A stretch of 64,000 bases of DNA from Leucoraja erinacea (lineage: Eukaryota), in assembly GCF_028641065.1 (NCBI RefSeq), contig NW_026576387.1, positions 1 through 64,000 on the forward strand, written 5' to 3'. Shown here piece by piece: positions 23,788 to 55,644 of the stretch. The notes under the pieces are model-generated. The model was not told the DNA's origin. It did not search any database and worked only from the letters and a program-made list of their open reading frames with translations. The position numbers and the translations under genes are program-made. Each line of letters starts with the position of its first letter. Positions within the stretch are counted from its first letter, which is position 1.

Positions 23788-24306
23788 AAGGGGACACGAC
23801 TTGAGAATTAAGGGACTGAAGTTTAGGGGTAACATGAGGGGGAACTTCTCTACTCAGAGAGTGGTGGCTGTGTGGAATGAGTGAAGGTGGTGGAGGCGGG
23901 TTCGTTTTTATCATTTAAAAATAAATTGGATAGTTATATGGACGGGAAGGGAATGGAGGGTTATGGTCTGAGCGCAGGTATATGGGACTAGGGGGGAATA
24001 TGTGTTCGACACGGACTAGAAGGGTCGAGATGGCTTGTTTCCGTGCTGTAATTGTTATATGGTTATATATTAATAACAGGTATAACCTAATATGAGACCA
24101 GTGTCAAAATACACAATGAATATAGACCTCCCGGTCTCTGTGTACATATAGTTAAATCTTTAAAAGGAAACTTATAAACTCTCTGTTGAGATGAATTCTG
24201 ATTTGCTTGCGGTGCATGGCAACAACATCCTGCTGCTGCCGATTGGCTAGACAATACATAGGGTCGAGATGGCCTGTTTCCATGCTGTAAATTGTTATAT
24301 GGTTAT
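23788..24306 (+). mobile_element. CR1-B 3' fragments in the IgL leader intron (23788-24068 and 24260-24306)
   Basis: B-type UTR GGGTCGAGATGGC.TGTTTCC.TGCTGTAA and an ATATGGTT tail. Confidence 0.85.
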
Positions 24307-24341
24307 AAGTTACCATCTTGTCCCATTGTGTTTTGTTGAAG

Positions 24342-24701
24342 GTATCTTGGCGGTTCCAACTCTGCTCCAGAGTCCAACGTCCAGCCCTGTCTCCGCGGGG
24401 CAGACCGCCCGCTTAGAGTGTGGGGTTCAGAACTTAAACGTTGCAAGTTACGGCGGGATGTGGTACCGACAGCGTCACGCGGGCAGACCGGAGTTTGTGC
24501 TAGTACATTGGGCTAGTGGTAGCATTGAGAGAGGGGCCGGTGTCACTGACCGATTCGTACCGTCGAGAGACACCTCCACCAACAGTTATATCCTGACCAT
24601 CGACAGGCTGGAGCCCAGAGACGCCGCCGTCTATTACTGTGCCGTGAGGGAAACAAATACGGCTTATCACTTCGGCGGGGGGACCATCATGGATATAACT
24701 A
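24342..24701 (+). CDS. Ig light chain V-J exon, germline-joined (type I / sigma-cart-like)
   Basis: Acceptor ttttgttgaag ends at 24341. Encodes (G)ILA-VPTLLQSP...ARLEC...WYRQ...long CDR2...DRF...DAAVYYCAVRETNTAYHFGGGTIMDIT, with conserved Cys/Trp/Cys and the J motif FGxG in one ORF. Phase-1 donor A|GTAAGT at 24701/24702. Confidence 0.95.
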
Positions 24702-24934
24702 GTAAGTGTCCCTCTTTCAGTTTCTATCAATTTCAATAGGGAGGTTTCACCACCCATGACCCGTACTATTGCCACGCTACGCCAACTAGAGTACACGCGA
24801 TGAACTGCAGGTACGCACTCACCAACGGGCCCGCTAAAGCCCGCCGAAATTGTCAATTTCTGCGCTGTAAATAATCACGGAAATCGGGATAAGCGTGTGA
24901 GACATTTAGCCTACTTCAGAATTTCAAAAGCGAG

Positions 24935-31250: not shown

Positions 31251-31806
31251 ACACCCCCCCCCCCCCCCCCCCACCCCTCGACTCCATTCAAGGACCCACG
31301 CAGTCGTTCCAGGTGCGACACTTGGTCTATTCACTGTAATTTAGAAGGAGAGGAAGGGGCCCTATAGAAATAAATAATATTCTTAAAGGACAGGCTAGAT
31401 GCAGGAAAATGTTCATGATGTTGGGGGAGTCCAGAACCAGCGGTCACAGTTTACGAATACGGGGTAGAGGCCATTTAAGACAGATGTGGAAAAGCCTTGG
31501 GATACATGACGCTGTAGAATTCTCCGCCAATTCTCTGAAGGCAGTGGAGGCCAATTCACCGGATGTTTTCCAGAGAGAGTGTAGCTATTACGGCTATCCG
31601 GATCAAGGAATCTGGGGAAAAATCAGGAACGGGGTCCTGATTTTAGATAATTAGCCATCAGTCATTTTGCTTCTCAGCATATCCGGAAACGTTATACTGT
31701 CATGTCTGACATATGCTGGCCATTACCCATATTTTCAAATCACCAGAACTTAAACTTACTCTCGATATAAGGACCCAGCCTTTATTCTCGAGGAAGCAGG
31801 GAATAT

Positions 31807-34800
31807 TAACCATATAACCATGTAACAATTACAGCACGGAAACAGGCCATCTCGGCCCTACAAGTCCGCGCCGAACAACTTTTTTTCCCTTAGTCCCACC
31901 TGCCTGCACTCATACCATAACCCTCCATTCCCTTCTCATCCATATGCCTATAAAATTTATTTTTAAATGATACCAATGAACCTGCCTCCACCACTTCCAC
32001 TGGAAGCTCATTCCACACCGCTACCACTATCTGAGTAAAGAAGTTCCCCCTCATATTACCCCTAAACTTCTGTCCCTTAATTCTGAAGTCATGTCCTCTT
32101 GTTTGAATCTTCCCTATTCTCAAAGGGAAAAGCTTGTCCATGTCAACTGTGTCTATCCCTCTCATCATTTTAAAGACCTCTATCAGGTCCCCCCTTAACC
32201 TTCTGCGCTCCAGAGAATAAAGACCTAACTTATTCAACCTATCTCTGTAACTTAGTTGCTGAAACCCAGGCAACATTCTAGTAAATCTCCTCTGTACTCT
32301 CTCTATTTTGTTGACATCCTTCCTATAATTGGGCGACCAAAATTGTACACCATACTCCAGATTAGGTCTCACCAATGCCTTGTACAATTTAACATTACAT
32401 CCCAGCTTCTATACTCAATGCTCTGATTTATAAAGGCTAGCATACCAAAAGCTTTCTTTACCACCCTATCTATATGAGATTCCACCTTCAAGGAACTATT
32501 CTTTCAGCTTCTCATTTGCTGCACACATACGTGTATTTATGCGGTGATCCACAGTAAAGTTAGGGAAGAGTTAAAGACAATGTTACATAGAAAACATAGA
32601 AACATAGAAAATAGGTGCAGGAATTCGAGCCAGCACCGCCATTCATTGTGATCATGGCTGATCGTCCCCAATCAATAACCCGTGCCTGCCTTCTCCCCAT
32701 ATCCCTTGACTCCACTAGGCCCTAGAGCTCTATCTAACTCTCTCTTAAATCCATCCAGTGACTTGGCCTCCACTGCCCTCTGTGGCAGGGAATTCCTCAA
32801 ATTCACAACTCTCTGGGTGAAAAGGTTTTTTCTCGCCACAGTCTTAAATGACCTCCCCTTTATTCAAAGACTGTGTGTGGCCCCTGGTTCTGGACAACAT
32901 CGGGAACATTAGGCCCAACATCGGGAACATTTCTCCTGCATCTAGCTTGTCCAGTCCTTTTATAATTGTATATGTTTCTATAAGATTCCCCCTCATCCTT
33001 CTAAACTCCAGTGAATCCAAGCCTAGTCGTTTCAATCTTTCCTCATATGACAGTCCCGCCATCCCAGGGATCGATCTCGTGAACCAACGCTGCACTGCCT
33101 CAATCACAAGGATGTCCTTTCTCAAATTAGGAGACCAAAACTGTACACAATACTCCAGATGTGGTCTCACCAGAGCCCTGTACAACTGCAGAAGAACCTC
33201 TTTACTCCTATACTGAAATCCTCTTGTTATGACATCGTCGTTGCAGTCCAAATTGAGCAATAGAACAGTTGCATCGCCATTGCTTAAATTTCTACTGTAT
33301 TTGTTCTAATTATCGAGAACGTTTAATTATTTTACCTCTGACAATAGGCTCTTGACTGCCAGTTATCTGTCTTCCGTAGTATGCAGTATACCGCCCAAAG
33401 GGAGGCTTTCGCAAACTATAAGAACAATTTCGTCAGGACACTGCAGGATTAGGGAAAAGGGAAATCTTATACATAATTGGATCGTTTTCGCGGAGGGTCC
33501 AATGCTCAGTGGATATACCATATAATATAACCATATAACAATTACAGCACGGAAACAGGCCATCTCGGCCCTACAAGTCCATGCCGAACAAATGTTTTCC
33601 CCTTAGTCCCACCTGCCTGCACTCGTACCATAACCCTCCATTCCCTTCTCATCCATATGCCTATCCAATTTATTTTTAAATGATACCAATGAACCTGCCT
33701 CCACCACTTCCACTGGGAGCTCATTCCACACCGCCACCACTCTCTGCGTAAAGAAGTTCCCCCTCATATTACCCCTAAACTTCTGTCCCTTAATTCTGAA
33801 GTTATGTCCTCTTGTTTGAATCTTCCCTATCCTCAAAGGGAAAAGCTTGTCCACATCAACTCTGTCTATCCCTCTCATCATTTTAAAGACCTCTATCAGG
33901 TCCCCCCTTAACCTTCTGCGCTCCAGAGAATAAAGACCTAACTTATTCAACCTATCTCTGTAACTTAGTTGTTGAAACCCAGGCAACATTCTAGTAAATC
34001 TCCTCTGTACTGTCTCTATTTTGTTGACATCCTTCCTATAATTTGGCGACCAAAATTGTACCCCATACTCCAGATTTGGTCTCACCAATGCCTTGTACAA
34101 TTTTAACATTACATCCCAGCTTCTATACTCAATGCTCTGATTTATAAAGGCTAGCATACCAAAAGCTTTCTTTACCACCCTATCTATATGAGATTCCACC
34201 TTCAAGGAACTATGCACGGTTATACCCAGATCCCTCTGTTCAACTGTATTCTTCAATTCCCTACCATTTACCATGTACCATATAGACAATAGGTGCAGGA
34301 GTAGAGGCCATTCGGCCCTTCGCGCCTGCTCTGCCATTCAATGTGATCATGGCTGGTCATCCACAATCAGTACCCCGTTTCTGCCTTCTCCCCATATCTA
34401 CAGACGCCGCTATCGTTTAAGAATTCTATCTAACTCTCTCTTGAAAGCATCCGGAGAACCGGCCTCCACCGCCTTCAGAGGCAGACTCACCACTCTCTGT
34501 GTAAAAAAAAGTTTTTCCTCATCTCCGTTCTAAATGGTTACTACTTATTCTTAAACTGTGGTCCCTGGTTCTGGACTCCCCCAACATCCGGAACATGCTT
34601 CCTGCCTCTAGTGTGTCCTAACCTTCAATAATCTTATAGGTTCCAATGTTACCCTATCATCCTTCTACATTCCAGAGTATACAATCCCAAACGCTCCCTT
34701 CTATGTCCTAAACCTCTACAGGTGCAAGGTAGAGAGCATTCTGACTGATTCCATCGTGGCTTCCTTCGGCAACTTGAACGTCCAAGAGCGAAAAAGACTA

Positions 34801-36973: not shown

Positions 36974-38468
36974 ATAGAAACATAGACATAGAAACATAGA
37001 ACATAGGTGCAGGAGTAGAGGCCATTCGGCCCTTCGAGCCTGCACCGCCATTCAATATGATCATGGCTGATCATCCAACTCAGTATCCCATCGCTGCCTT
37101 TTCTCGATACCCCCGATCCGTTTAGCCACAAGGGCCACATCAAACTCCCGCTTAAATATAGCCAATGAACTGTGGCCTCAACTACCTTCTGTGGCAGATA
37201 ATTCCACAGATTCACCACTCTCTGTGTGAAAAAAAATGGTTTTCTCATCTCGGTCCTAAAAGATTTCCCTCTTATCCTTAAACTGTGACCCCCTAGTTCT
37301 GGACTTCCCCAACATCGGGAACAATCTTCCTGCATCTAGCCTGCCCAACCCCTTAAGAATTTTGTAAGTTTCTATAAGATCCCCCCTCAATCTTCTAAAT
37401 TCTAGCGAGTACAAGCCGAGTCTATCCAGTCATATAACCATATAACCCCATATAACAATTACAGCACGGAAACAAGCCATCTCGACCCTTCTAGTCCGTG
37501 CCGAACACGTATTCTTCCCTAGTCCCATACACCTGCGTTCAGACCATAACCCTCCATACCTTTCCCGTCCATATAACTATCCAATTTATTTTTAAATGAT
37601 AAATACGAACCTGCCTCCACCACCTTCACTGGAAGCTCATTCCACACAGCCACCACTCTCTGAGTAAAGAAGTTCCCCCTCATGTTACCCCTAAACTTCT
37701 GTCCCTTAATTCTGAGGTCATGTCCCCTTGTTTGAATCTTCCCTATTCTCAAAATGAAAAGCTTGTCCACATCAACTCTGTCTATCCCTCTCATCATTTT
37801 AAAGACCTCTATCAAGTCCCCCCTTAACCTTCTGCGCTCCAGAGAATAAAGACCTAACTTATTCAACCTATCTCTGTAACTTAGTTGTTGAAACCCAGGC
37901 AACATTCTAGTAAATCTCCTCTGTACTCTCTCTATTTTGTTGACATCCGTCCTATAATTAGGCGACCAAAATTGTACACCATACTCCAAAATTGGCCTCA
38001 CCAATGCCTTGTACAATTTTAACATTACATCCCAACTTCTATACTCAATGCTCTGATTTATAAAGGCCAGCACACCAAAAGCTTTCTTTACCACCCTATC
38101 TACATGAGATTCCACTTTCAGGGAACTGTGCACAGTTATTCCCAGATCCCTCTGTTCACCTGCATTCTTCAATTCCCTACCATTTACCATGTACGTCCTA
38201 TTTTGATTTGTCCTGCCAAGATGTAGCACCTCACACTTATCAGCATTAAACTGCATCTGCCATCTTTCAGCCCACTCTTTGGTCTCACCAATGCCTTGTA
38301 CAATTTTAACATTACATCCCTTTCTTCATATGGAAGTCCTGCCATCCCAGGAATCAGTCTGGCGAACCTTCTCTGTACTCCCTCTATGGCAAGAATGTCT
38401 TTCCTCAGATTAGGGGCAAGAATGTCTTTCCTCAGATTAGGGGCAAGAGTGTCTTTCCTCAGATTAGG
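36974..38468 (-). mobile_element. CR1-A and CR1-B fragments directly 3' of GPCR-A
   Basis: ORF 37519-38256, with a 27-bp triplication at about 38388-38468. Confidence 0.88.
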
Positions 38469-38533
38469 ATTTTTTATTATCAAAGGTTTTATAGTCTGAA
38501 ACTGTGAAGAGTACACAACTAATCTACATACCG

Positions 38534-39432
38534 TTATATACATAGCTTCCCATTTAAGGTAAACATATACTTCACTCCATTTTTCAGCTCCTCTCTAAAT
38601 TTCCTTTGTGTGAGACCATAAATGCAGGTGTTGCTGCAAGTACTGAGAAACTGCAGCATGAATCCACATTGTTGAAATATATATATGGGACTATTCAAAT
38701 ATCTGTCCCCATAGGTAACATTCACCGCCTGCCAGTTCATTGAATGTATTACATAGGGCATCCACAGTAAAATGAAGTTCGCTGATATCGCGAACAGGAG
38801 AATCATTGATTTTCTCCGGTTTTCCACCTCTGAATCTTTCTGATTTTCACTGGGACTTTTCAGCGACTTCCGGACCTGATTTGCCGCGACGATGTGCCTG
38901 ACGGTTAACCCATTAAACAGAAGAATGAAACATATGGGTAGCAACGGCGTTACGAGGCTGTCAAACAACTCGTGTCCTTTCCAGAGGGGAGAAGTGAAGT
39001 ACTCGGGCGTTTTCACGCAAAGCCAGGGCACAGAGTCGATGATAACAAAAGGCTCAGCCTCGAAATAAAAAGGGATACACCTCACACAGCTCACTATCGT
39101 CACCATTACTATCACCTTGGTGGCTGTTCTCGCTGTACAATATCGTTCCCGCAGATTTGGGAAACAGATGGCGACGCATCTATCGAAGGTAAAAGCCACT
39201 GTAAGCCAAACGGAACAGTCGGTGCTTGCAACTGTAAACACGGTGGTCAGGGAACATATCGGAGTTATCAGCAAGAATCGGGCGTAATAATACATGCTGT
39301 TGATCTGTCTGAGAATATTAGCAATGACGACCATCATGAAATCCGCTCCTGCCATCCCAACCAGGTAGCGAGTGATACATTTGGAGAGTCCACATTTCCC
39401 ACGGGATAGGATCACGATAGCCGTTACATTAA
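38534..39432 (-). CDS. GPCR-A exon 2: class A 7TM receptor, GPR139/GPR142-related family (322 aa spliced)
   Basis: Acceptor tttctcattgcag. Contains TM1 Asn, MAGAD (D2.50), FDRCVAIC, PFYF, ECL2 PWLC, FILLWMP, CSNTCIY and helix-8 KFREEL. Uninterrupted ORF to stop. Confidence 0.92.
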
Positions 39433-39459
39433 CTGCAATGAGAAAGGAAAGCACAGAGT

Positions 39460-41432
39460 TATACGTGGTAAATGGTAGGGAATGGAAGAATGTAGGTGAA
39501 CAGAGGGATCTGGGAATCTGGGAATAACTGTGCACAATGGGCTGAAAGATGGCAGATGGAGTTTAATGCTGATAAATGTGAGGTGCTGCATCTTGGCAGG
39601 ACAAATCAAAATATGACGCACATGGTAAATGGTAGCGAATTGGGGAATGCAGTTGTACAGAGGGATCTAGGAATAACTACGCATAGTTCCCTGAAAGTGG
39701 AATCTCATGTAGATAGGGTGGTAAAGAAAGCTTTTGGTGTGCTGGCCTTTATAAATCAGAGCATTGAGTATAGAAGTTGGGATGTAATGTTAAAATTGTA
39801 CAAGGCATTGGTGAGGCCAATTCTGGAGTATGGTGTACAATTTTGGTCGCCTAATTATAGGAAGGATGTCAACAAAATAGAGAGAGTACAGAGGAGATTT
39901 ACTAGAATGTTGCCTGGGTTTCAGCAACTAAGTTACAGAGAAAGGTTGAACAAGTTAGGGCTTTATTCTTTGGAGCGCAGAAGGTTAAGGGGGGGACTTG
40001 ATAGAGGTTTTTAAAACGATGAGAGGGATAGACAGAGTTGATGTGGATAAGCCTTTCCCACTGAGATTAGGGAAGATTCAAACAAGGGGACATGACTTGA
40101 GAATTAAGGGACTGAAGTTTAGGGGTAACATGAGGGGGAATTTCTTTACTCAGAGAGTGGTAGCTGTGTGGAATGAGCTTCCAGTGAAGGTGGTGGAGGC
40201 AGGTTCGTTTTTATAATTTAAAAATAAATTGGATAGTTATATGGACGGGATGGGAATGGAGGGTTATGGTCTGAGCGCAGGTATATGGGACTAGGGGAGA
40301 TTATGTGTTCGGCACGGACTAGAAGGGTCGAGATGGCCTGTTTCCGTGCTGTAATTGTTGTATGGTTATATGGTTATATGGTTAAATAAACCAAAAAGCT
40401 TCTTATGCCCCTGTCCCACTTAGGAAACCTGAACGGAAATCTCTGGAAACTTTGCGCCCCACCCAAGGTTTCCGAGCGGTTCCCGGAGGTCGCAGGTAGT
40501 GGAAGCAGGTAGGGAGACTGACAAAAACCTCCGGCAACCGCACGGAAACCTTGGGTGGGGCGCAAAGTCTCCAGAGATTTCCGTTCAGGTTTCCTTAGTG
40601 GGACAGGGGCATAAAGAGACCCTGGTTCGATCCTGGAGTATTGCGTGCAGTTTTGGTCTCCTAATCTGAAGAATGACATTCTTGCCATAGAGGGAGTACA
40701 GAGAAGGTTCACCAGACTGATTCCTGGGATGTCAGGACTGTCATAACCATATAACCATATAACAATTACAGCACGGAAACAGGCCATCTCGACCCTTCTA
40801 GTCCGTTCCGAATACGTATTCTCCCCTAGTCCCATATACCTGCGCTCAGACTATAGCCCTCCATTCCTTTCTCGCCCATATAACTATCCAATTTATTTTT
40901 AAATGATAAAAACGAACCTGTCTCCACCACCTTCACTGGAAGCTCATTCCACGCAGCCACCACTCTCTGAGTATATGAGGAAAGACTGGATAGACTCGGC
41001 TTGTACTCGCTAGAATTTAGAAGATTGAGGGGGGGATCTTATAGAAACTTACACATTTCTTAAGGGGTTGGACAGGCTAGATACAGAAAAATTGTTCCCG
41101 ATGTTGGGGAAGTCCAGAACAAGGGGTCACACAGTTTAAGGATAAAGGGGAAATCCTTTAGGACCGAGATGAGAAAAAAAATTACACAGAGAGTGGTGAA
41201 TCTGTGGAATTCTCTGCCACAGACGGTAGTTGAGGCCACAGTTCATTGGCTATATTTAAGAGGGGGTTAGATGTGGCCCTTGTGGCTAAAGGGATCAGGG
41301 GGTATGGAGAGAAGGCAGGTACAGGATACTGAGTTGGATGATCAGCCATGATCATATTGAATGGCGGTGCAGGCTCGAAGGTCCGAATGGCCTCTACTCC
41401 TGCACCTATTTTCTATGTTTCTATGTTTCTAT
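39460..41432. mobile_element. CR1 fragments filling the GPCR-A intron (B+ 39460-40385, A+ 40633-41432 with nested B- 40742-40972)
   Basis: ORFs 39496-40014 and 39998-40216, with tails. Confidence 0.88.
40406..40611. mobile_element. Harbinger-like MITE in the GPCR-A intron
   Basis: Same TIRs, with TTA/TAA flanks. Confidence 0.75.
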
Positions 41433-41460
41433 GAAAGCGCGACCAGACCCAGCGCCTTAC

Positions 41461-41530
41461 CAATAATACCAACCGCTGCAAATACAGGATAGTAAATGCT
41501 CCCGATGTAGTAAATTGCTGGATATGGCAT
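41461..41530 (-). CDS. GPCR-A exon 1 (MPYPAIYYIGSIYYPVFAAVGII-G): short N-terminus and first half of TM1
   Basis: Minus-strand ATG at 41530, 23 codons plus G, then GTAAGG donor. Joins in frame to 39432 giving ...GII-V-NVTAIVIL. Confidence 0.88.
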
Positions 41531-41972
41531 TTTCGCGATCAGTTCTTCAAAATGTTCTAGCGGTCCCATGCACAGGCGACTGCTTTATGATCATCTAATA
41601 TACGAGGGATAAGTTCCACTGCGCCAATTAGTGCGAATGTCTTGTCAGTCGTGTCATCCATAACACCTACACCATCTTTACGAGTTGCTATATTTTTTTA
41701 CCATTGCGCCATTGTGCAATGCAATCCACTCCTAAAGGAATACGACAAACAACATTAGACGTTGTCTGAAACTGCAAGTTACGGCACTTAATTCCCCGAG
41801 GAGAATTACAAACGCAATGACTCCCAAGCTGCATTGAGTATCCTCTCATTGTGCCTTATGCAAGGATCTAAATCTTAACCAATATCCTCCATGTCTGCTA
41901 TCAGCATGAGGATTTCCATTCTAGGAGGTGTCGAAATCATCTTTCATCAGTAACCGTGGATTCTTCGGTCTG

Positions 41973-42256
41973 NNNNNNNNNNNNNNNNNNNNNNNNNNNN
42001 NNNNNNNNNNNNNNNNNNNNNNNNNNNNNNNNNNNNNNNNNNNNNNNNNNNNNNNNNNNNNNNNNNNNNNNNNNNNNNNNNNNNNNNNNNNNNNNNNNNN
42101 NNNNNNNNNNNNNNNNNNNNNNNNNNNNNNNNNNNNNNNNNNNNNNNNNNNNNNNNNNNNNNNNNNNNNNNNNNNNNNNNNNNNNNNNNNNNNNNNNNNN
42201 NNNNNNNNNNNNNNNNNNNNNNNNNNNNNNNNNNNNNNNNNNNNNNNNNNNNNNNN
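41973..42256. other. Assembly gap (284 N)
   Basis: Run of N. Confidence 1.
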
Positions 42257-43022
42257 ACATAGAAACATAGAAACATAGAAAATAGGTGCAGGAGTTGAGG
42301 TCATTCAGCCCTTCGAGCCTGCACCATTCGCCATTCAATATGATCATTGCTGATCATCCAACTCAGTATCCTGTACCTGCCTTCTCCCCTGATCCCTTTA
42401 GCCACAAGGGCCACATCTAACTCGCTCTTAAATATAGCCAATGAACTGTGGGGCCTCAACTACCCTCTGTGGCAGAGAGTTCCAGAGATTCACCACTCTC
42501 TGTGTGAAAAATGTTTTTCTCATCTCGGTCCTAAAAGACTTCCCCCTTATCCTTCAACCGTGGTCCCTTGTTCTGGACTTCCCCAACATCGGGAACAATC
42601 TTCCAGCATCTAGCCTGTCCAACCCCTTAAACATTTGTACGTTTCTATAAGATCCCCCCCTCAATCTTCTAAATTCTAGCGAGTACAAGCCGAGTCTATC
42701 CAGTCAATCTTCATATGAAAGTCTTGACATCTCAGGAATCAGTCTGGTGAACCTTCTCTGTACGCCCTCTATGGCAAGAATGTCTTTCCTCAGATTAGGA
42801 GACCAAAACTGTACGCAATACTCCAGGTGTGGTCTCACCAAGACAACTGCAGTATAACCTCCCTGCTCCTATACTCAAATCCTTTTACCATGAATGCTAA
42901 CATACCATACGCTTTCTTCACTGCCTGCTGCACCTGCATGCCTACTTTCAATGACTGGTGTACCATAACACCCAGGTCTCGTTGCATCTCCCCTTTTCCT
43001 AATCGGCCACCATTCAGATAAA
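42257..43022 (-). mobile_element. CR1-A fragment
   Basis: A-type RT C-terminus and tail. Confidence 0.88.
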
Positions 43023-43750
43023 TAAAAAAATCGAGGAAATGCCATCCCGGACAAACTTCTCAAACCGTTTCCATGCCAGTGATGTGATCCATTAATTTCC
43101 TAGATTATATTCACTTCACTTCTTCAACAAAGGAATATCACTGGGTGTCCCCTCCGTCCTCCGAGACCTCGCCTGTGGCAGGAGATGACCTTCATTACAA
43201 TACAATGCAATACAATACAATACCTGTATTTGTCATTTGAACCTCACATGAGGTTCAAACGAAATTTAGTTTCTGCAGCCATACAATAAAAGAACCAAAA
43301 CACACACCAACACTATTCACATAAACATCCCTCCTCACTGTGATGGAAGGCAAAGTTCTTGTCTCTCCCCTGCATTCCGTTTCCCTCCCGAAGTCGAGGT
43401 CAAAGCCCTTAAAGTCCTGCAATGCGTTCACTTGCCACACTCTATCACATGGAATAAACCCCATCGGGCTTTGCTCAATTGTCCACCTTCAAGAGTCCAA
43501 ATATCACCTTCTTGAATTCAACCTGCCTTCGCATATTAATATTACCTCCTAATTATATTGTATTCATTCATCCCTACGCATGGAGCCTCAGTGGGGTAAT
43601 CTTCCAATTGTTCCTTGTCTACCCCGTCGTAATATTATTCCTGATTGCTGGAGCAACCCTTCCCTCCATTTTGTATCCCTTTCTATCAATCTAAATAATG
43701 GAATCCCTGAACAGTTGCAATTGCCAGCCCTGTCCTTCGCGGAACTTTAA

Positions 43751-44451
43751 TGTCCCTGTCCCACTTAGGAAACCTCTGGAGACTTTGCGCCCCACCCAAG
43801 GTTTCCGTGCGGTTCCCGGAGGTTCCCGGAGGTTTTTGTCAGTCTCCCTAATGGTCGAAAGTGGTTGCCGCTTCTTCTATGTTCCGGCGATTATTTCAAA
43901 CAACCGGCCGCGACTAAAATTAGGTTGCCGTTTTAAAAACCGGTAATTTTTTAGTCGAAGCCGGTTGCGATGCTGGTTGAAGGCGGTTCAACGTTCAACC
44001 ACCTGCAACCTCCGGCAACCACCTTCAACCTCCCGCAACCACCTGCAACCTCCGGCAACCAACTTTCATAGGACTTTCATATGAAGAAAGACTGGGTAGA
44101 CTCGGCTTGTACTCGCTAGAATTTAGAAGATTGAGGGGGGATCTTATAGAAACTTACAAAATTCTAAAGGGGTTGGACAGGCTAGATGCAGGAAGATTGT
44201 TCCCGATGTTGGGGAAGTCCAGAACAAGGGGTCACAGTTTAAGGATAAGGGGAAATCTTTTAGGACCGAGATGAGAAAAACATTTTTCACGCAGTGAGTG
44301 GTGAATCTGTGGAATTGTCAGTCTTCCCACCTTCTTCCACTACCTTCAACCTCCCGCAACCACCTGCAACCTCCGGGAACCGCACGGAAACCTTGGGTGG
44401 GGCGCCAAGTCTCCAGAGGTTTCCGTTCAGGTTTCCTAAGTGGGACAGGGG
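43751..44451. mobile_element. Longer Harbinger-like MITE with nested CR1 fragment (about 44070-44315)
   Basis: Same TIRs, extra internal sequence and 21-bp CAACCACCTGCAACCTCCGG-type repeats. Confidence 0.7.
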
Positions 44452-44561
44452 TCAGAGAGCGCAATATTAAAGATGACAATTAACTAACAAATCTGCATCT
44501 CTATATATATTTTTACCAATAACATGTACAATACAAATAAACGCACCACCATATTACAAGT

Positions 44562-44850
44562 ATCGGTGGCGCAGAGGTGGATTTCCTGCTTTACAGCGCT
44601 TGCAGCGCCGGAGTCCCGGGTTCGATCCGGGACTCTGGGTACTGTCAGTACGCAGTTTGTACGATCTCTCCGTGACCGCTTGGGATTTCTCCGAGATCTT
44701 CGGTTTCCTCCCACACTCCAAAGACTTGCCGGTTTGTAGGTGGATTGTTTTGGGATAACTCTAAATTGTCCCGTGTGTGAGTGATATTCTTAATGTGCGG
44801 GCATCGCTGGTCGTTGCACACTCGGTGGGCCGAAGGGAGCCCTCTCGTGC
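44562..44850 (+). mobile_element. tRNA-derived V-SINE (HE1-like)
   Basis: A box TGGCGCAGAGGTGG, B box GGTTCGATCC, and a central domain ...CGGTTTCCTCCCACACTCCAAAGAC... Confidence 0.75.
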
Positions 44851-45199
44851 CTGGCGCGGTTACTCGCGGAAGGCCAGCTTCGCCAGGACCATCTGCTCCT
44901 CTTTGCTGTGTGGGAGGGCGCCGGAGAAACCGCAGAAATCCCCCATGGTCACGGATAGATCGTGGAAACTGCACACTGACATCTCACTGGCAATGTCAGG
45001 GCTGCAACTCTTCCCGCTGCGCTATTGGACGCCCACAGTCTTTTTTTTTCAAAGGTAGATTGTGCTAAATCTGTACACGTGGGTTTAAAGTGAGAGATTT
45101 AAGGATAAAGGAGAAATATTTTACGACTGAGATGAGAAAAACATTTTTTTTCACACACAGAGAGTGGTGAATCTGTGGAACTCTCAGCCACAGAAGGTA

Positions 45200-45820
45200 A
45201 GATTAAGATTCAATTTAATTGTCATTTGGACCACTTGAGGTCCAAACGAAATGCCGTTTCTGCAGCCATACATTACAAACAAATAGACCCAAGGCACAAC
45301 ATAATTTACATAAAAACATCCATCACATCGCTGTGATGGAAGGCCAAACAAACTTATCTCTCCACTGCACTCCCCCCCCCCCCCCCCCCCCCCCCCCATG
45401 TCAGAGTCAAAGCCTCCGGCTGGCAATGGCGATTGTCCCGCGGCCATTAAAGCCACGTCGGGTGGTGCAAGGTCGCACACCGGGTCTTGGTGTTAGAGCC
45501 CCCGGCGTGCGCTCGCAGAGTCCCGCGGCCATTCTAAGCCGCGCGGGGCGGTGCTGCAAGGCCCCGCTCCAGGAGCTCTTCGTCCCCGCAACTCGGGCGG
45601 GAGAAGTCGCCGTTGCGAGAGCCCTGAAAAGCGGTCTCCCTCCAGGGACCGCGGGCTCCCGGTGCCGCCGTCCGCCAGACCCGCAGTTGCAGCCTCCGAA
45701 TCTCCGGAGGTCGGGCCGCAGCAGCAGCAGCAGCAGCAACGCTCCACCACCGCTCCACCCGCTCTGGACTCGGTCAGCTCCGCGACGGTGAGGTGAGTCG
45801 TCGGCACCAGAGTCCCCGGT
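45200..45820 (-). mobile_element. GC-rich non-coding retroelement-like insertion (related ends at about 43195-43405 and 56785-57310)
   Basis: Splits a CR1 at AGAAGGTA|...|GGTAGTT. Has a microsatellite tail, an ATGACAATTAAA-type end and a short hairpin, resembling the Rex1-type 3' ends in this window. Confidence 0.45.
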
Positions 45821-46371
45821 AGTTTAGGCCACAGTTCATTGGCTATATTTAAGAGGGAGTTAGATGTGGCCCTTGTGGCTAAAGGGATCAGGGGAGTATG
45901 GAGGTAACGGGATACTGAGTTGGATGATCAGCCATGATCATATTGAATGGCGGTGCAGGCTCGAAGGGCCGAATGGCCTCTACTCCTGCAACTATTTTCT
46001 ATGTTTCTATGTTTCTATTTAAGAGAGTCTTCAGCAGGTCCTTTTTCATTTGGTGTTTTTTTTTCCTATAGGGATTGAATTTCAGGAATAAGCTATATTG
46101 GTGGATGCCATTTCGACTGCTCAAATATATTTAATAGACGAATCGCAAAGTTACCGGCGGCTGCGGGACAAATGCGGGCAAGTGGGACTGGTGCACAATG
46201 TAAACCTCGTCTTGACTTGCCTAACTTCAAGTTGCCTTTGTCTTCCCGTTCTCTCCATTCCTCCCCCATTCCCAGTTATCTGACTGTCCTCGTTTACACG
46301 TTACCTCTATTTCATTTGTTGTTAACTTCTCCTAGATAATATTAATCTATTGTATATCTTCCTTGAGTTCC

Positions 46372-47488
46372 ACCCTCCTGACATGGATAGAGAAGTGGTT
46401 GGCTGACAGAAAACAAAGAGTAGGGATTAACGGGTCCCTTTCAGAATGGCAAGCAGTGACTAGTGGGGTACCGCAAGGCCCGGTGTTGGGACCCCAGCTA
46501 TTTACAATATACATCAATGATTTGGATGAAGGGATTCAAAGTAACATTAGCAAATTTGCAGATGACACAAAGCTGGGTGGCAGTGTGAACTGTGAGGATG
46601 ATGCTATGAGAATGCAGGGTGACTTGGACAGGTTGGGGGAGTGGGCAGATGCATGGCAGATGAAGTTTAATGCAGATAACTGTGAGGTTATCCACTTTGG
46701 TAGCAAAAACAGGAAGGCAGATTACTATCTAAATGGCGTCAAGGTGGGAAAAGGGGAAATACAACGGGATCTGGGGGTCCTTGTACATCAGTCTATGAAA
46801 GTAAGCATGCAGGTACAGCAGACAGTGAAGAAAGCGAATGGCATGTTGGCCTTTATAACAAGAGGAATCGAATATAGGAGCAAAGAGGTCCTTCTGCAGT
46901 TGTACAGGGCCCTAGTGAGACCACAGCTGGAGCATTATATGCAGTTTTGGTCCCCTAATTTGAGGAAGGACATTCTTGCTATTGAGGGAGTGCAGCGTTG
47001 GTTTACAAGGTTAATTCCCGGGATGGCGGGACTGTCATATGCTGAATGACTGTCACAGCTGGGCTTGTACACTCTGGAGTTTGGAAGGATGAGAGGGCAT
47101 CTCATTGAATCATATAAGATTATTAAGGGCTTGGACACACTAGAGGCAGGAAACATGTTCCCGATGTTGGGGGAGCCCAGAACCAGGGGCTACAGTTTGA
47201 GAATAAGGACCAGGCCATTTAGAACGGAGACGAGGAAACACTTTTTCTTACAGAGAGTGGTGAGTCTGTGGAATTATCTGCCTCAGAGGGCGGTGGGGGC
47301 AGGTTCTCTGGATGATTTAAAGAGAGAGCTAGATAGGGCTTTTAAAGATAGCGCAGTCAGTGGATATGGGGAGAAGGCAGGGACGGGGTACTGATTGGGG
47401 AAGATCAGCCATGATCACATTGAATGGCGGTGCTGGCTCGAAGGGCCAAATGGCCTCCTCCAGCACCTATTGTCTATTGTCTATTGTC
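46372..47488 (+). mobile_element. CR1 subfamily C fragment containing the RT core ((TATTGTC)n tail)
   Basis: VTSGVPQGPVLGP.LF.IYINDL...FADDTK, with a premature stop at 47047-47049. Confidence 0.92.
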
Positions 47489-47927
47489 GTTGTCTCGTTT
47501 ATACAATTTCCATATGTCAATGTCTCCCTTTCGCCGAATCAGGGTCTCGACACGATTCGTCACGCAATCATTCTTTCCAGAGATGCTGCCTGTCCCGCTG
47601 AGTCACGCCAGCATTCTTTGTCTATGTTCAACATGGTGAACAGACGCTAGATGGGCAGACGACGTGCTACCGTGTTGGACAACACTATGAATCCCTGACT
47701 CTTTAATAGTCGCTCTTCGGGATTTTATTTCCAATTAACCTTTCTCAATTCACTAGCTCAAGACAGAGTTCAATGGGGAGTGATTGACTGATGCTACCTC
47801 CAGTACTGAAGGAATGATCTCGAAGAGTGGGCGCCGTAATGCCAAATCTATATTCAATGGAAACGGTTTTGCAAATCAGGGCAGTGAAAGCAACGTGAGG
47901 CGCGGAAAATGTTGACTGTGCTTGCAA

Positions 47928-48890
47928 TAGAAACATAGAAACATAGAAAATAGGTGCAGGAGGAGGCCATTCGGCCCTTCGAGCCAGCACCGCCATTCAT
48001 TGTGATCATGGCTGATCGTCCCCTATCAATAACCCGTGCCTGCCTTCTCCCCATATCCCTTGACTCCACTCGCCCCTAGAGCTCTATCTAACTCTCTCTT
48101 AAATCCATCCAGTGACTTGGCCTCCACTGCCCTCTGTGGCAGGGAATTCCACAAATTCACAACTCTCTGGGTGAAAACGTTTTTTCTCACCTCAGTCTTA
48201 AATGACCTCCCCTTTATTCTAAGACTGTGTGTGGCCCCTGGTTCTGGACTCGCCCAACATTGGGAACATTTTTCCTGCATCTACCTTGTCCAGTCCTTTT
48301 ATAATTGTATATGTTTCTACAAGATCTTCCCCTCATCCTTCTAAACTCCAGTCAATACAAGCCTTGTCTTTTCAACCTTTCCTCATATGACAGTCCCGCC
48401 AGCCCGGGGATCAATCTCGTGAACCTACGCTGCACTGTCTCAATCACAAGGATGTCCTTCCTCAAATTAGGAGACCAAAACTGTACACAATACCCCAGAT
48501 GTGGTCTCACCAGAGCCCTATACAACTGCATAAGAACCTCTCTACTCCTATACTGAAATCCTCTTGTTATGAAGGCCAACATTCCATTAGCTTTCTTCAC
48601 TGCCTGCTGTACCTGCACGCCAACTTTCAGTGACCGGTGTACAAGGACACCCAGTTCTCGCTGTACCTCCCCCTTACCTAACCTAACCCCATTGAGATAA
48701 TAATCAGCCCCCTTGTTTTTGCCGCCAAAGTGGATAACCTCACATTTATCTATGTTATACTGCATCTGCCACGCATCTGCCCACTCACTCAACCTGTCCA
48801 GGTCACCCTGCAACCTCCTAACATCCTCGTCAAAGTTCACACTGCCACCCAGCTTTGTGTCATCTGCAAACTTGCAAATATTGCTAATGT
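47928..48890 (-). mobile_element. CR1 subfamily D fragment
   Basis: ORF 48352-48915: FADDTK...[13 protein letters not shown]. Confidence 0.9.
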
Positions 48891-49100
48891 TGCCCCCCCC
48901 CCCCCCCCCCCCCATTGTCCAGGTGACGTCAACCGTTGGCTCAAATCTGACGAAGGTCTATTTTGAATATCATTGCAACATGATGAATATCCCTGGGGAT
49001 ATTCCAAATGTACATAAAAACCTATGGCTCGGCGGCACATCGTCATTCTTGGATTCCAGACAGTGACGGTGGCTCGGACGAACAGCTCGTCGCCCGAAGA

Positions 49101-49167
49101 ATGCATTTACTAGTGAGCTCGGTGGCGAGGGTGTGGTACATCATCATCGCCGTTATCGGAGTCCCTG
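49101..49167 (+). CDS. GPCR-B exon 1 (MHLLVSSVARVWYIIIAVIGVP-G)
   Basis: ATG at 49101, 22 codons plus G, then GTTAGT donor. Joins in frame to 54752 giving GVP-V-NLVAMVIL. An upstream in-frame ATG at 49008 could add 31 aa. Confidence 0.85.
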
Positions 49168-49438
49168 GTTAGTGAACGGACAAGTGTGACTCGGAATTCC
49201 ACTGGCATTGTTTAATATTGGTAATCTGTAGTCAATGATGGTACAGAAATCAACAATAATGTCACAGCAATGATGTTACATCGCGAGTTTTTACGATTTT
49301 CAATGTTGTAATATGTCATGTTTGCTTTCATTAACTCAATCCGTCTTAACCTTCTTATATTTAGAATCATCAGCCGCGCAGGCTATAAATAGCATCTGAT
49401 GCTCGCTACTTTGGCGTTGATCCGGTGATTTCTTGATT

Positions 49439-52400
49439 ACATAGAAACATAGAAATTAGGTGCAGGAGTAGGCCATTCGGCCCTTCGAGCCTGCACCGCC
49501 ATTCAATATGATCATGGCTGATCATCCAACTCAGTATCCCGTACCTGCCTTCTCTCCATACCCTCTGATCCCCTTAGCCACAAGGGCCACATCTAACTCC
49601 CTCTTAAATATAGCCAATGAACTGTGGCCTCGACTACCCTCTGCGGCAGAGAGTTCCAGAGATTCACCACTCTCTGTGTGAAAAAAGTTCTTCTCATCTC
49701 GGTTTTAAAAGATTTCCCCCTTATCCTTAAGCTGTGACCCCTTGTCCTGGACTTCCCCAACATCGGGAACAATCTTCCTGCATCTAGCCTGTCCAACCCC
49801 TTAAGAATTTTGTAACTTTCTATAAGATCCCCTCTCAATCTCCTAAATTCTAGAGAGTATAAACCAAGTCTATCCAGTCTTTCTTCATAAGACAGCCCTG
49901 ACATCCCAGGAATCAGTCTGGTGAACCTTCTCTGCACTCCCTCTATGGCAATAATGTCCTTCCTCAGATTTGGAGACCAAAACTGTACGCAATACTCCAG
50001 GTGTGGTCTCACCAAGACCACAGTACAGATTAGTACAGGTTATGGGGAGAATGGAGGAGAATGGGGTTCGGAGAGAAAGATAGTTCAGCCATGATTGAAT
50101 GACGGAGTAGACTTGATGGGCCGAATGGCCTAATTCTACTTCTCTCATTTATGACCTTCTGACCCTATAATTTTGCCCGTGAACGGTGAGAATGGTTGCT
50201 CATACTTGCACGGTGTCTGGACTTCTTATACACGGAACCACTTCACAGTTGTCATGCATTATTGGTGAGGTCTTCTGCTGTGGAATAAAACTGAGGCACT
50301 ATGTCTAGATCTGTTACAAAACTTACCTTCAGCGGCGCTGCAGTTCTGCCACTGGCCGTGTGAGCGACTTTGGCGCCTTTGAGGGGGGGGGGGGGGGTTA
50401 ATGCAGTTTTTCTCCTACCTGTCCTGGATATATTTTCTCGGAGTGCAAGCCTTTGTTGAAGAATTGTTCCGACGGTCGTTCTGTGAATATTTTTTTTAAA
50501 TCGCCCGACAAGTTCAGCCCTGGAGTCATTTTAAAATCAGCTTCTAATGCCATCAACGCCGACGACGGGGACTGATTTCACGCACGGGACAGGTAAAGGA
50601 AAGCCATTTATTTTATGTATATACTTGCTTCTTAAGATGCCTTTAATCCACATTTTACGTTGCGAAAAGGTGACTTAGGACCCATACGAGCCGGCAGTAT
50701 TTTTCCTGCCGATATGGGATTTAAATTCACTGCTACCGCAACGTTCCAAACGATCGCGTTCCTCAAAATCCCACTAGCAAGATGATTTAAATGGCCATTA
50801 ATTTACGGGAATTAAACACTAAATTCCTTTTCATTTGGCCTATAAATCCATGACAATGAGATTTAAAAATCATGTTATATTGTGAATGTTATTTGGACAC
50901 TTAGGCTATTATAAAATGTTGATCTTTTCTTAAGAAATGGATAGATGTTTAGATCTAGTAATTGAATTTTGTAATTAGCTACGATTGGGTAACTAACTAA
51001 TTATATGCTTTAATTTCAGGTCATCCAAGTAAGATTGTTTCGTATATGTTTCAGAATGCTTCAATCTATAATAACTGAACATTTCTTTCAATTCTCTTAA
51101 TTTTTAAGAAATTTATGGGCTTTTGACTGTCCTCGATCACAGCTTTTGTGTTAAGTCAATGGAAAAGCAATAGGGAACAAGATGCTAATTTCCGAGTATG
51201 AAAATGGTCATAACGTTTTTAATACTGAAGATATGAAAGTGAATTAGGTGTCAAATTAAACTTCTTTTTATGCTTTATCCGATGGGATAAATTGCAGACT
51301 TGATTTTCTAAATCTCAAAATTTTGTAACATTGCTACTTATGTTAACCGTGCGTTTCATAGAAACATAGAAACATAGATGATAGGTGCAGGAGTAGGCCA
51401 TTCGGCCCTTCGAGCCTGCACCGCCATTCAATATGATAATGACTGCTCATCCACCTCAGTATCCTGTACCTGCCTTCTCTCCATACCCCCTGATCCCTTT
51501 AGCCACAAGGGCCACATCTAACTCCCTCTTAAATATAGCCAATGGACTGTGGCCTCAACAACCTTCTGTGCCAGAGATGTCCACAGATTCACCACTCTCT
51601 GTGTGTGAAAAATGTTTTCCTCATCTCGGTCCTAAAAGATTTCCCCCTTATCATTAAACTGTGACCCCTTGTCCTGGACTTCCCCAACATCGGGAATAAT
51701 CTTCCTGCATCTAGCCTGTCCAACCCCTTAAGAATTTTGTAAGTTTCTATAAGATTCCCCCTCAATCTTCTAAATTATATCGAGTACAAACCGAGTCTAT
51801 CCAGTCTTTCTTCATATGAAAGTCCTGACATCCCAGGAATCAGTCTGGTGAACCTTCTCTGTACTCGCACTATGGCTAGAATGTTTTTCCTCAGATTAGG
51901 AGACCAAAACTGTACACAATACTCCAGGTGTGGTCTCACCAAGACCCTGTACAACTGCAGTAGAACCCCCCTGCTCCTATACTCAACTCCTTTTGCTTTG
52001 AATGCTAACATACCATTCGCAATACTCCAAGTCAATGGAAAAGCAATAGGGAACAAGATGCTAAGTTCCGAGTATGAAAATGGCCATAACCTTTTTAATA
52101 CTGAAGATATGAAAGTGAATTAGGTGTCAAATCAAAATTATTGTTATGCTTTATCTGATGGGATAAATTGCGGACTTGATTTTTAAAGTCTCAAAATGTT
52201 GTAACATTGCTACTTATGTTAACCGTGTGTTTCACGTAACACCAGCAGCTGCATGCGGTGACGTTGTCTGTGTAGGTTTACACTGCGTGTGATCAAACCC
52301 CCTTGTGTCAAAGTCCTTGTATTAGGTGGCGTAGTTCTCTGCAATCTTTTAATCAAATTGCAGAGACAGTGTAACTGTATTAGCTTAAGTTTTTATTGAA

Positions 52401-54602
52401 GGGTGTTTTGGTGATGAAATGACAGCAGCGGAAAAAAAATAAGAGATTATGAGAATGGGATGTAATGTTAAAATTGTACAAGGCATTGGTGAGGCCAATT
52501 TTGGAGTATGGTGTACAATTTTGGTCGCCTAATTATAGGAAGGATGTCAACAAAATAGAGAGAGTACAGAGGAGATTTACTAGAATGTTGCCTGGGTTTC
52601 AGCAACTAAGTTACAAAGAAAGGTTGAACAAGTTAGGGCTTTATTCTTTGGAGCGCAGAAGGTTAAGGGGGGACTTGATAGAGGTTTTTAAAGTGATGAG
52701 AGGGATAGACAGAGTTGACGTGGACAAGCTTTTCCCACCGAGAGTAGGGAAGATTCAAACAAGGGGACATGACTTGAGAATTAAGGGACTGAAGTTTAGG
52801 GGTAACATGAGGGGGAACCTCTTTACTCAGAGAGTGGTGGCTGTGTGGAATGAGCTTCCAGTGAAGGTGGTGGAGGCAAGTTCGTTTTTATCATTTAAAA
52901 ATAAATTGGATAGTTATATGGACGGGAAGGGAATGGAAGGTTATGGTCTGAGCACAGGTATGTGGGACTAGGGGAGAATATGTGTTCGGAACGGACTAGA
53001 AGGGTCGAGATGGCCTGTTTCCGTGCTGTAATTGTTATATGGTTATGTGGTTATTAATGTTTTCACTTAATAAAGGACGCAGCTAACAACAATCAATTAT
53101 TAGCAAGAATTACATCTCGGATCCGGATGGATTGCACCCAGAGCTTCACAGAGAACAGCAGAGAAAATAGGAGAGGGATTGATAACCATATTTACATGAT
53201 GAATAGAGAAGTGAACCGTAATCAGCATTTAGTGAATGATGAATACAACTTGTGTCCAATGAATGGTATATTATACTGTAGACCTGGTCTGAGGAAATAC
53301 ATTCTTGCCATAGAGGGAGTACAGAGAAGGTTCCCCAGACTGATTCCTGGGATGGCAGGACTTTCATATGAAGAAATACTGGATAGACTCGGCTTGTACT
53401 CGCTAGAATTTAGAAGATTGAGGGGGGATCTTATAGAAACTTACAAAATTCTTAAGGTGTTGGACAGGCTCGATGCAGGAAGATTGTTCCCGATGTTGGG
53501 GAAGTCCAGAACTAGGGGTCACACAGTTTAAGGATAAGGGGGAAGTCTTTTAGGACGGAGATGAGAAAATCATTTTTTGCACAGAGAGTGGTGAATCTGT
53601 GGAATTCTCTGGCACAGAAGGTAGTTGAGGCCACACAGTTCATTGGCTATATTTAAGAGGGAGTTAGATGTGTCCCTTGTGGCTAAAGGGATTAAAACGA
53701 GCTGGTGGGGACACATTGGGAATATTGTGAGCAGCTTTCGACCACATACTGGAGGAACGATATGTTAGCTTTGGAGAAGGTCCAGAGGAGGTTTACGAGA
53801 ATGAGGAGGTTTAGGGAGGGTTGCAATAACGGATGAGGAACGTTTGAAAGCTTTGAAGATTTAGACTTGTTTTATGGCGGAGATGGATAGGATCTTCATT
53901 AATTTTGTTTAACAGTTTCGGTCTCCTAATCTGAGGAAATACATTCTTGCCATTGAGGGAGTACAGAGAAGGTTCACCAGACTGATTCCTGGGATGGAAG
54001 GACTTTCATATGAAGAAAGTCTGGATAGACTCTGCTTGTACTCGCTGGAATTTAGAAGATTGGGGGTGGGCGGGGGGGGGGGGGTCATATAGAAACTTAC
54101 AAAATTCTTAAGGGGTTGGACAGGCTAGATGCAGGAAGATTGTTCCCGATGTTGTGGAAGTCCAGGACAAGGGGTCACACAGTTTAAGGATAAAGGGGAA
54201 ATCCTTTAGGACCGAGATGAGAAAAACATTTTTCTCACAGAGAGTGGCGAATCTATGGAATTCTCTGCCACAGAAGGTAGTTGAGGCCACAGTTCATTGG
54301 CTATATTTAAGAGGGAGTTAGATGTGGCCCTTGGGGCTAAAGGGATCAGGGGGGATGGAGAGAAGGCAGGTACAGGATACTGAATTGGATGATCAGCCAT
54401 GATCATATTGAATGGCGGTGCAGGCTCGAAGGGCCGAATGGCCTACTCCTGCACCTAATTTCTATGTTTCTATGTTTCTATGAAGGAATGCAGGTGCAGG
54501 ATACTGAGTTGGATGATCAGCCATGATCATATTGAATGGCGGTGCAGGCTCGAAGGGCCGAATGGCCTACTCCTGCTCCTATTGTCTATGTTTCTATGTT
54601 TC
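49439..54602. mobile_element. CR1 fragments in the GPCR-B intron: A(-) 49439-50020, A(-) 51358-52020, B(+) 52456-53054, A(+) 53287-53692, A(+) 53918-54602
   Basis: RT C-terminal ORFs and tails. Confidence 0.88.
50306..51336. mobile_element. hAT-like non-autonomous DNA transposon in the GPCR-B intron
   Basis: Imperfect TIRs TAGATCTGTTACAAAA / TTTTGTAACATTGCTA. Flanks actatgtc / cttatgtt resemble a decayed 8-bp TSD. Confidence 0.5.
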
Positions 54603-54751
54603 TCTGATTCCATGAATGGTGGATAGGCGTGAGGCTCCACATATTTGTCCAATTCTGGAGTATTTTGGTATTCATTCTGTATTCCCGTGTGCGTCCAATA
54701 TGTAGAATGGCTATTTATTAAGTTCCCACCTTTTCCTTACTCTTTCCACAG

Positions 54752-55644
54752 TGAATTTGGTGGCAATGGTGATCCTGTCGCGGGGAAAGTGCGGCCTCTC
54801 CACCTGCACCACTCTCTACCTTGTGGCCATGGCAGCGGCCGATCTACTGAACATTCTCACCCAAGTACTTCTGCGGAAAATCGCCTTCTATTATTTCCCG
54901 TGGAGTTTTCTCAACATCACCCCCGTGTGCAGCATTATCTATGTCTTGGTCCGCGCGGCCACCGACTGCTCCGTCTGGTTCACCGTCACTTTCACCTTCG
55001 ATCGCTTCGTGGCCATTTGTTGTCGGAAGCTGAGCACAAGGTTCTGCACCAAGAACACAGCGGCCACGGTGTTGTCCGTCACCGCCAGTCTGATCTGCTT
55101 CAAGAACGTGCCGTTCTACTTTTCAATGGAATCGCGGGAGATGGTTGGCGGCGTGCCCTGGTTCTGTGTAAGAAAACCGGGCTATTTCACCGATCCCGGG
55201 TGGGTGGGCCTTGACTGGTTTGCTACAGTGCTAACACCATTTATTCCGTTTGTTGTCATCTTGTTGCTCAATGCTCTGATCGTTAGACACATTTTAGTCG
55301 CTAGTCAAGTTCGCAAGGCGTTGAAGCGGGAGGACTGTAATGACCCTGAAATGGAGAGCAGGAGAAGATCTATTGTTCTCCTCTTCGCCATATCTGGCAG
55401 CTTCATATTCTTGTGGTTGACAAACGTTGTACACTTCTTGTATTATTTCTGTTCCGGTGCAGTCCCATCCGTGCAAAATGATTCTCTGTACACATTGGGT
55501 GTAGTCGGGATCATGCTCCTGAACTTAAATTGTTGCACAAGCACATTTATATACGCGGTGACTCAGTCCAAGTTCAGGGAGCAGCTCCTGAAAGCGGTGG
55601 CGTGTCCGCTATCCACAATTATTCAAAGCATTGGCAATAAATGA
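54752..55644 (+). CDS. GPCR-B exon 2: class A 7TM receptor, GPR139/GPR142-related family (319 aa spliced)
   Basis: Acceptor cttttccttactctttccacag ends at 54751. Contains MAAAD, FDRFVAIC, PFYF, VPWFC, FIFLWLT, CTSTFIY and KFREQL. Intact ORF, paralogous to GPCR-A. Confidence 0.92.

Follow-up and report, generated by a model that had tools for sequence, protein, structure and literature searches.

We analysed a 64,000-nucleotide stretch of the skate Leucoraja erinacea genome (positions 1 to 64,000 of contig NW_026576387.1, RefSeq assembly GCF_028641065.1; hereafter the window), which carries two divergently oriented class A receptor genes, here called gene A and gene B. Exon mapping bore out the original prediction of two complete two-exon seven-transmembrane (7TM) genes, of 322 codons (gene A) and 319 codons (gene B), with consensus splice sites and a Pfam 7tm_1 domain in each. 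The features of the two genes are as follows, with a slash marking each splice point.

41461..41530, minus strand: gene A exon 1, 70 nt (ATG plus 23 codons plus 1 base), donor G/GTAAGG
39433..41460, minus strand: gene A intron, 2,028 nt, phase 1, full of long interspersed nuclear element (LINE) and other repeat fragments
38534..39432, minus strand: gene A exon 2, from N1.50 to the stop (inner half of transmembrane helix (TM) 1 to helix 8), acceptor CAG/TT
49101..49167, plus strand: gene B exon 1, 67 nt (ATG plus 22 codons plus 1 base), donor G/GTTAGT
49168..54751, plus strand: gene B intron, 5,584 nt, phase 1, densely filled with pieces of LINE reverse transcriptase
54752..55644, plus strand: gene B exon 2, from N1.50 to the stop, acceptor CAG/TG

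The start, donor, acceptor and stop of gene A are intact, and its acceptor is preceded by a polypyrimidine tract. Exon 2 matched PF00001 (7tm_1) with 71.6 bits (E 9.7e-20; gathering cut-off 30.5) and scored 505.9 bits against a hidden Markov model (HMM) of the receptor family described below. Of the 86 columns conserved at 90% or more over 124 family members, two are altered, which is the family median; gene A is thus typical of the family at conserved columns. Exon 1 codes for three N-terminal residues followed by the outer half of TM1; it was located with an HMM trained on the N-termini of 39 homologues (25.9 bits, E 2e-9), a regular expression for the YYP motif having given no match.

Gene B likewise has an intact start, donor, acceptor and stop, and its exon 2 matched PF00001 with 67.9 bits (E 1.3e-18, against the same cut-off) and the family HMM with 468.8 bits. 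Its exon 1 scored weakly with the A-type N-terminus HMM and was accepted because it agrees with the N-termini of B-clade homologues: the peptide resembles those of P0222, P0239 and P0136, with the same ...IGVP/V end, and its second half agrees almost residue for residue with B-type homologues such as P0222 and P0239. Seven of the 86 conserved columns are altered in gene B, including N7.49S and P151S, placing it at rank 123 of 124. Gene B is intact but derived, and its function may be impaired.

The two genes share their architecture, as had been predicted. Both introns are phase 1 and lie at the same place in TM1: exon 2 opens with two bases that finish the Val codon immediately preceding N1.50. 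An AlphaFold2 (AF2) model of P0003, an A-like, 74%-identical full-length homologue, showed 7TM plus helix 8 (predicted local distance difference test, pLDDT, 83; predicted template modelling score, pTM, 0.82) with TM1 beginning at residue 4, giving an N-terminus of about three residues and bearing out the claim that the receptors have almost none. The short N-termini of A and B were chosen because the annotated starts of homologues served as a guide. Each gene also has an in-frame ATG further 5' and before the nearest upstream stop: that at 41569-41567, 39 nt 5' of the gene A start, would add 13 residues, and that at 49008-49010, 93 nt 5' of the gene B start, would add 31.

Comparison of the two proteins revealed 47% identity over 287 aa (BLASTP) and 64 identical residues of 124 from TM1 to TM4, reproducing the predicted figure of about 52%, and all four cytoplasmic motifs named earlier (VILSRGKCGLS, TDCSVW.TV.FTFDR.VAIC, D.E.E.RR.S..LLFAIS and TQ.KFRE.L) were found in both. 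The proposed gradient of identity held overall, identity rising from 37% on the extracellular side to 53% on the side facing the cytoplasm (Fisher p = 0.005), with values of 10% in extracellular loop (ECL) 3 and 20% in the outer half of TM2. In TM3 the outer half, at 56%, proved less diverged than had been claimed. Codon positions 1 and 2 were 65% identical and position 3 was 35% identical, with a nonsynonymous divergence (dN) of 0.46 and a saturated synonymous divergence (dS; Nei-Gojobori method, NG86), a contrast indicating purifying selection through most of the separate history of the two genes. Both A and B have thus long been under purifying selection.

The receptor family and its relation to GPR139

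Database searches were made with exon 2 of A and of B, and at 90% non-redundancy family searches returned 1,897, 2,375 and 2,144 proteins. The best 120 matches for each exon 2 all came from sharks, skates and rays, and almost all were automatically named 'probable GPR139'. Within these two lists of best matches Heterodontus francisci contributed 53 and 20 distinct proteins, which sets its complement at no fewer than 73 (at least 73 members, on many chromosome-sized contigs). Among representatives at 50% identity, 105 clusters had E <= 1e-30, after which there was a sharp drop. In the chimaera Callorhinchus the family has at least five members, which share 72-75% identity among themselves. Judged by this distribution, the family is chondrichthyan, small in chimaera and large in elasmobranchs. 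Some proteins of the same family carry other automatic names, namely vasopressin V2 receptor-like, neuropeptides capa receptor-like, type-2 angiotensin II receptor-like, GPR15-like and galanin receptor 2a-like (among P0308, P0294 and P0407-P0409), so that counts based on names are too low. A full-text literature search found no published description of a chondrichthyan GPR139-like family, which is apparently undescribed.

The nearest relatives outside the cartilaginous fishes occur in salamanders (33% identity), coelacanth (31%), one silverside (28%) and amphioxus (26%), in small species-restricted clusters; the coelacanth, salamander and silverside proteins (P0358, P0335 and P0365) matched with E 7e-34 to 3e-18. 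The original prediction of a lineage-expanded family therefore stands for the expansion, which is chondrichthyan, and has to be qualified for the origin, which is not strictly lineage-restricted given the distant relatives in coelacanth, salamanders and one teleost. Within the skates the best match in another species was 78% identical for gene A and 65% for gene B, and the best match anywhere was 78% and 67%, respectively; neither gene thus has a close annotated orthologue, which fits rapid turnover.

A quick maximum-likelihood tree was built from 59 hand-picked rows, all others being left out, and without true GPR139 or GPR142 sequences, neither of which was among the best 150 representatives. 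In this tree the chondrichthyan proteins formed one clade with a Shimodaira-Hasegawa-like approximate likelihood ratio test (SH-aLRT) support of 90. Gene A fell in a batoid subclade beside a Rhinoraja protein (SH-aLRT 97) and gene B in a separate clade of sharks and rays (SH-aLRT 99), placing the A/B split before the shark-ray split; the terminal branch was 0.48 for gene B and 0.16 for gene A. A large, clustered family with birth-and-death turnover, as is characteristic of chemosensory repertoires, is what these searches recovered.

GPR139 is the nearest solved relative. When the 124-sequence family profile was compared with solved structures, human GPR139 matched best and over its full length (E 1.6e-17; next CCR5, 1.4e-13), and the coelacanth, salamander and amphioxus relatives also matched GPR139 best. 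Among fold matches of the P0003 model, GPR139 (7vug) had the highest identity, 24%, at Z 28.9; the top rows were tied at Z 28-29, so that fold searches gave no discrimination within class A. Like GPR139, the family lacks a proline at 7.50, and together with the profile and fold matches this makes 'GPR139-related' a fair description. Of the class A microswitches, both A and B carry N1.50, D2.50, D3.49-R3.50 and W6.48, whereas Y3.51 is C in A and F in B, P7.50 is T in both, and gene B also has S at 7.49 and T at 6.50. Identity as a TAAR was also considered, TAAR13c being the top single-sequence PDB match of gene A, and was rejected: the amine-binding D3.32 is absent, with T in A and V in B, and this position is K, S, R or L across the family.

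Pocket variation and surroundings of the genes

Entropy over the 124 members averaged 1.65 bits in the extracellular TM halves versus 0.84 in the cytoplasmic halves (p = 3e-11), and intracellular loop (ICL) 1 was almost invariant at 0.27 bits. Within the outer halves, 32 generic pocket positions, taken from a generic list and x.50 anchors (4.50 being uncertain) rather than from model coordinates, averaged 1.87 bits versus 1.34 at the other 65 TM positions (p = 0.008). Entropy peaked at 2.61, 2.65, 3.28, 3.29, 3.32 and 3.33, each with 2.7-3.3 bits, and other strongly variable upper-pocket positions were 6.59, 7.39 and 7.43. The constant core of the family comprises the ICL1 motif SRGKCGLS, D2.50, W6.48 and the helix-8 KFRE motif, with FDR[F/C] in place of DRY and NTxxY in place of NPxxY. 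These data substantiate the predicted combination of a conserved cytoplasmic core with a diversified pocket.

The floor of the predicted pocket is conserved and acidic: D3.37 is present in 111 of 124 members, D or E at 5.39 in 103, D5.42 in 98 and E or D at 2.57 in 81. This pattern suggests a shared cationic or polar ligand anchor, with specificity varying above it. In sum, the family is large, is not in one-to-one orthology with GPR139 or GPR142 and does not have a uniformly conserved pocket, the original prediction having listed few members, such orthology and a uniform pocket as the findings that would speak against it.

Three further features of the window bear on the history of the locus.

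31655..31750, plus strand: relic of a third family member, TM6 piece (family HMM positions 233-261, E 0.002; W6.48 lost)
32478..32648, plus strand: relic of a third family member, TM7 to helix 8 (family HMM positions 281-320, E 1.2e-7; tblastn E 0.001)
41973..42256, no strand: assembly gap, the sole run of N in the window, 443 nt 5' of the gene A ATG

The two relic pieces are in different frames and have a LINE open reading frame (ORF), 31890..32387, between them; as read from these matches, the pieces at 31.6-32.6 kb are one dead, transposon-broken third copy. The assembly gap lies outside the coding sequences and introns of A and B, inside the 7.6-kb spacer that separates their 5' ends. A and B are therefore on different contigs linked by scaffolding only, and their distance and head-to-head orientation are scaffold-level statements. 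The promoter of gene A may be partly unread because of the gap. Comparison of the 440-700 nt upstream of A and of B revealed nothing shared beyond chance 9-mers and no common promoter motif.

Elsewhere in the spacer, 44000-46000 is the most GC-rich part (0.53) and contains overlapping proline- and glycine-rich ORFs on both strands, without a Pfam match; this region could be CpG-island-like or simple-repeat. At least two related LINE reverse-transcriptase families occur in both orientations throughout the window and fill both receptor introns, with copies at, for example, 13621-14463, 33603-34337, 37519-38256, 46363-47049 and 52465-52971; the copy at 46363-47046 scores as RVT_1, and the C-terminal fragment at 37522-38256 does not. 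A V-set immunoglobulin ORF (24269-24712, plus strand; Pfam E 5.7e-14) lies 14 kb from gene A. Its nearest solved relatives are antibody light-chain variable domains, and its V and J are already fused in germline DNA (YYC...FGGGT), with a GTAAGT donor downstream.

What the receptors may sense

We propose that A and B are functional members of a large, chondrichthyan-expanded and ligand-diversified clade of orphan class A receptors, most likely chemosensory, a reading that as a whole we consider about evenly poised between right and wrong. Its structural and evolutionary part, which rests on sequence comparison, is very probably correct; the chemosensory assignment taken alone is tentative, somewhat short of an even chance. 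A chemosensory or immune-surveillance role, as put forward in the original prediction, is at this stage a reasonable hypothesis. The clade, distantly related to GPR139 and GPR142, would have evolved by birth and death in transposon-rich clusters, with each paralogue binding a different small ligand inside the TM bundle. This ligand would probably be cationic or polar, or a short peptide, no larger ligand being expected because there is no N-terminal domain to bind one. All paralogues would signal to the same G protein and would together make up a repertoire that covers diverse chemicals, with external or food-derived chemicals the most likely target.

A bolder form of this proposal, which we regard as unlikely, is that the family represents the missing large odorant-type repertoire of sharks, skates and rays, recruited independently of the odorant receptors (ORs) and TAARs. 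Each sensory cell of the nose, or of another chemosensory epithelium, would then express one or a few receptors, and the acidic pocket floor would tune them to amines, polyamines or other cationic cues. Cartilaginous fishes are famed for their chemical sensitivity, yet their OR, TAAR and ORA families are tiny and their V2R set is modest (PMC11979771, PMC10116579). If true, the odorant-type proposal would explain keen elasmobranch chemoreception despite the handful of OR, TAAR and ORA genes. A family with dozens to more than 70 members per species and the traits of a ligand-diversified repertoire, hidden under the label 'probable GPR139', is an obvious candidate new sensory or surveillance system. 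Whichever ligands are bound, the GPR139 label is misleading on thousands of database entries, and the family offers a dated example of an orphan lineage that remained at few copies in bony vertebrates and multiplied explosively in a single clade.

Several observations weigh against the chemosensory proposal or against the function of one of the genes. Greater variability on the extracellular than on the cytoplasmic side is a common trait of class A subfamilies that differ in their ligands, and the pocket contrast inherits the generic, rather than modelled, choice of positions. The evidence of selection comes from the comparison of A with B. Gene B, with S at 7.49 and T at 6.50, may be impaired. 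In the catshark, no G-protein-coupled receptor (GPCR) was among the 50 most olfactory-specific genes (PMC11979771), and neither this study nor a multi-species study of chemoreceptors mentions the family (PMC11979771, PMC10116579). Finally, four RNA runs, bulk and single-cell and with the same species label, gave zero reads on both exons of gene A. These runs were searched over 38300-41700, a region that covered gene A, with 1.1-1.9 Gb sampled from each (1-25% of the run); their tissues are not on record, and they carry an organism code different from that of the DNA runs, making the species match uncertain. The absence of reads is thus a weak negative and not evidence of silence. A DNA index found the stretch in three runs only, none on record as RNA.

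The same four RNA runs gave hundreds to thousands of reads per bin on repeat copies at 39440-41491 (the gene A intron) and 38300-38413. These reads are 95-99% alike, stop exactly at the gene A exon edges and include many joints from other copies. Because they are only 95-99% alike, they come from other transposon copies, indicating that those transposon families are transcribed somewhere in the genome.

A serious though somewhat improbable alternative to a chemosensory repertoire is internal signalling. The receptors would then sit on nerve, endocrine or immune cells and respond to the body's own peptides, amines or metabolites, as GPR139 does in the habenula, and their number would have grown along with a ligand family or with lymphoid use, not with chemicals from outside. 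Consistent with this, GPR139, the nearest solved relative by profile (E 1.6e-17), acts in the brain as a receptor for aromatic amino acids or peptides (PMC7318219). The P0003 model has an ECL2 beta-hairpin, and its best fold matches are the peptide receptors CCK1R, NTSR1 and NPY4R. The immunoglobulin light-chain-type VJ gene 14 kb away might point to immune use, but mammalian OR genes also adjoin V genes, at the TRA locus, so that proximity to a V gene implies no immune role. Internal signalling is also difficult to reconcile with the high copy turnover implied by best other-skate matches of 78% and 65% and by the pseudogene relics, and the more than 70 paralogues per species far exceed the number in any known vertebrate subfamily of receptors for endogenous ligands.

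It is less probable still that A, B or both are decaying duplicates, no longer expressed, whose frames mutation has not yet broken, an explanation most plausible for gene B. The seven altered conserved columns of gene B, with N7.49S, P151S and T at 6.50, its long terminal branch (0.48 versus 0.16 for gene A), the transposon-rich neighbourhood with its dead copy and the zero RNA reads on the gene A exons would all fit decay. Against this, some 320 uninterrupted codons with intact start, donor, acceptor and stop are retained in both genes, the contrast between codon positions 1 and 2 and position 3 shows that selection acted through most of their past, gene A is typical at conserved columns and most of the changes in gene B are conservative. 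By far the least probable explanation, which we consider virtually excluded, is that A and B are orthologues of GPR139 or GPR142 in the skate, or recent copies of them, and detect aromatic amino acids in keeping with the label. The automatic names of nearly all homologues, the lack of a proline at 7.50 in the family as in GPR139 and a two-exon structure like that of GPR139 (PMC7318219) favour it. However, A and B are about 24% identical to human GPR139, whereas human and zebrafish GPR139 share 70% (PMC7318219), and gene A as a single sequence scored 37 bits to human GPR139 (phmmer), no better than to TAAR13c or NTSR1. The agonist pocket of GPR139 comprises E108, F109, H187, W241, R244 and N271 (PMC7318219); as read from the alignment of the family profile to GPR139, only W6.48 is kept, and the other five residues differ in both A and B (E3.32 to T/V, F3.33 to V/R, H187 to D/A, R6.51 to Y/N and N271 to F/I). 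There are two genes and one relic in the window alone, versus a single-copy GPR139, and thousands of paralogues overall. Low identity, five changed pocket residues of six and many copies per genome together exclude either gene as a GPR139 orthologue, as the original prediction had held.

Comparison with known receptor systems

Like the chondrichthyan family, GPR139 and GPR142 have two coding exons and a short N-terminus, and GPR139 also lacks a proline at 7.50 (NFFLY in GPR139, NTxIY in the family). In contrast to them, the family keeps the cysteine pair between C3.25 and ECL2 together with the acidic pocket floor, has tens to more than 70 copies per species rather than one, and shows rapid turnover rather than extreme conservation. 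The closest non-chondrichthyan relatives are the 'probable GPR139' genes of coelacanth, salamanders and silverside (P0358, P0335 and P0365), for which GPR139 is again the best, but weak, match (53-70 bits); unlike the family, they fall outside the chondrichthyan clade and form small species-restricted clusters with no expansion.

The family resembles the OR, TAAR, ORA/V1R and T2R systems in being a large clustered multigene set with pseudogene relics, lineage-specific turnover and a short N-terminus, and in combining a constant cytoplasmic core with variable pocket sites in TM2, TM3, TM6 and TM7. It differs from ORs and TAARs in having no OR or TAAR fingerprint, in that 3.32 is not Asp, and in an intron that interrupts the coding sequence within TM1, the coding regions of ORs and TAARs being usually intronless. 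The MRGPR and FPR receptors offer a parallel of another kind, the lineage-specific expansion of an otherwise low-copy, orphan-type receptor with possible somatosensory, immune or vomeronasal use; the chondrichthyan family is much larger and older, with an A/B split that precedes the shark-ray split, and its relationship to MRGPR and FPR is one at the level of class A.

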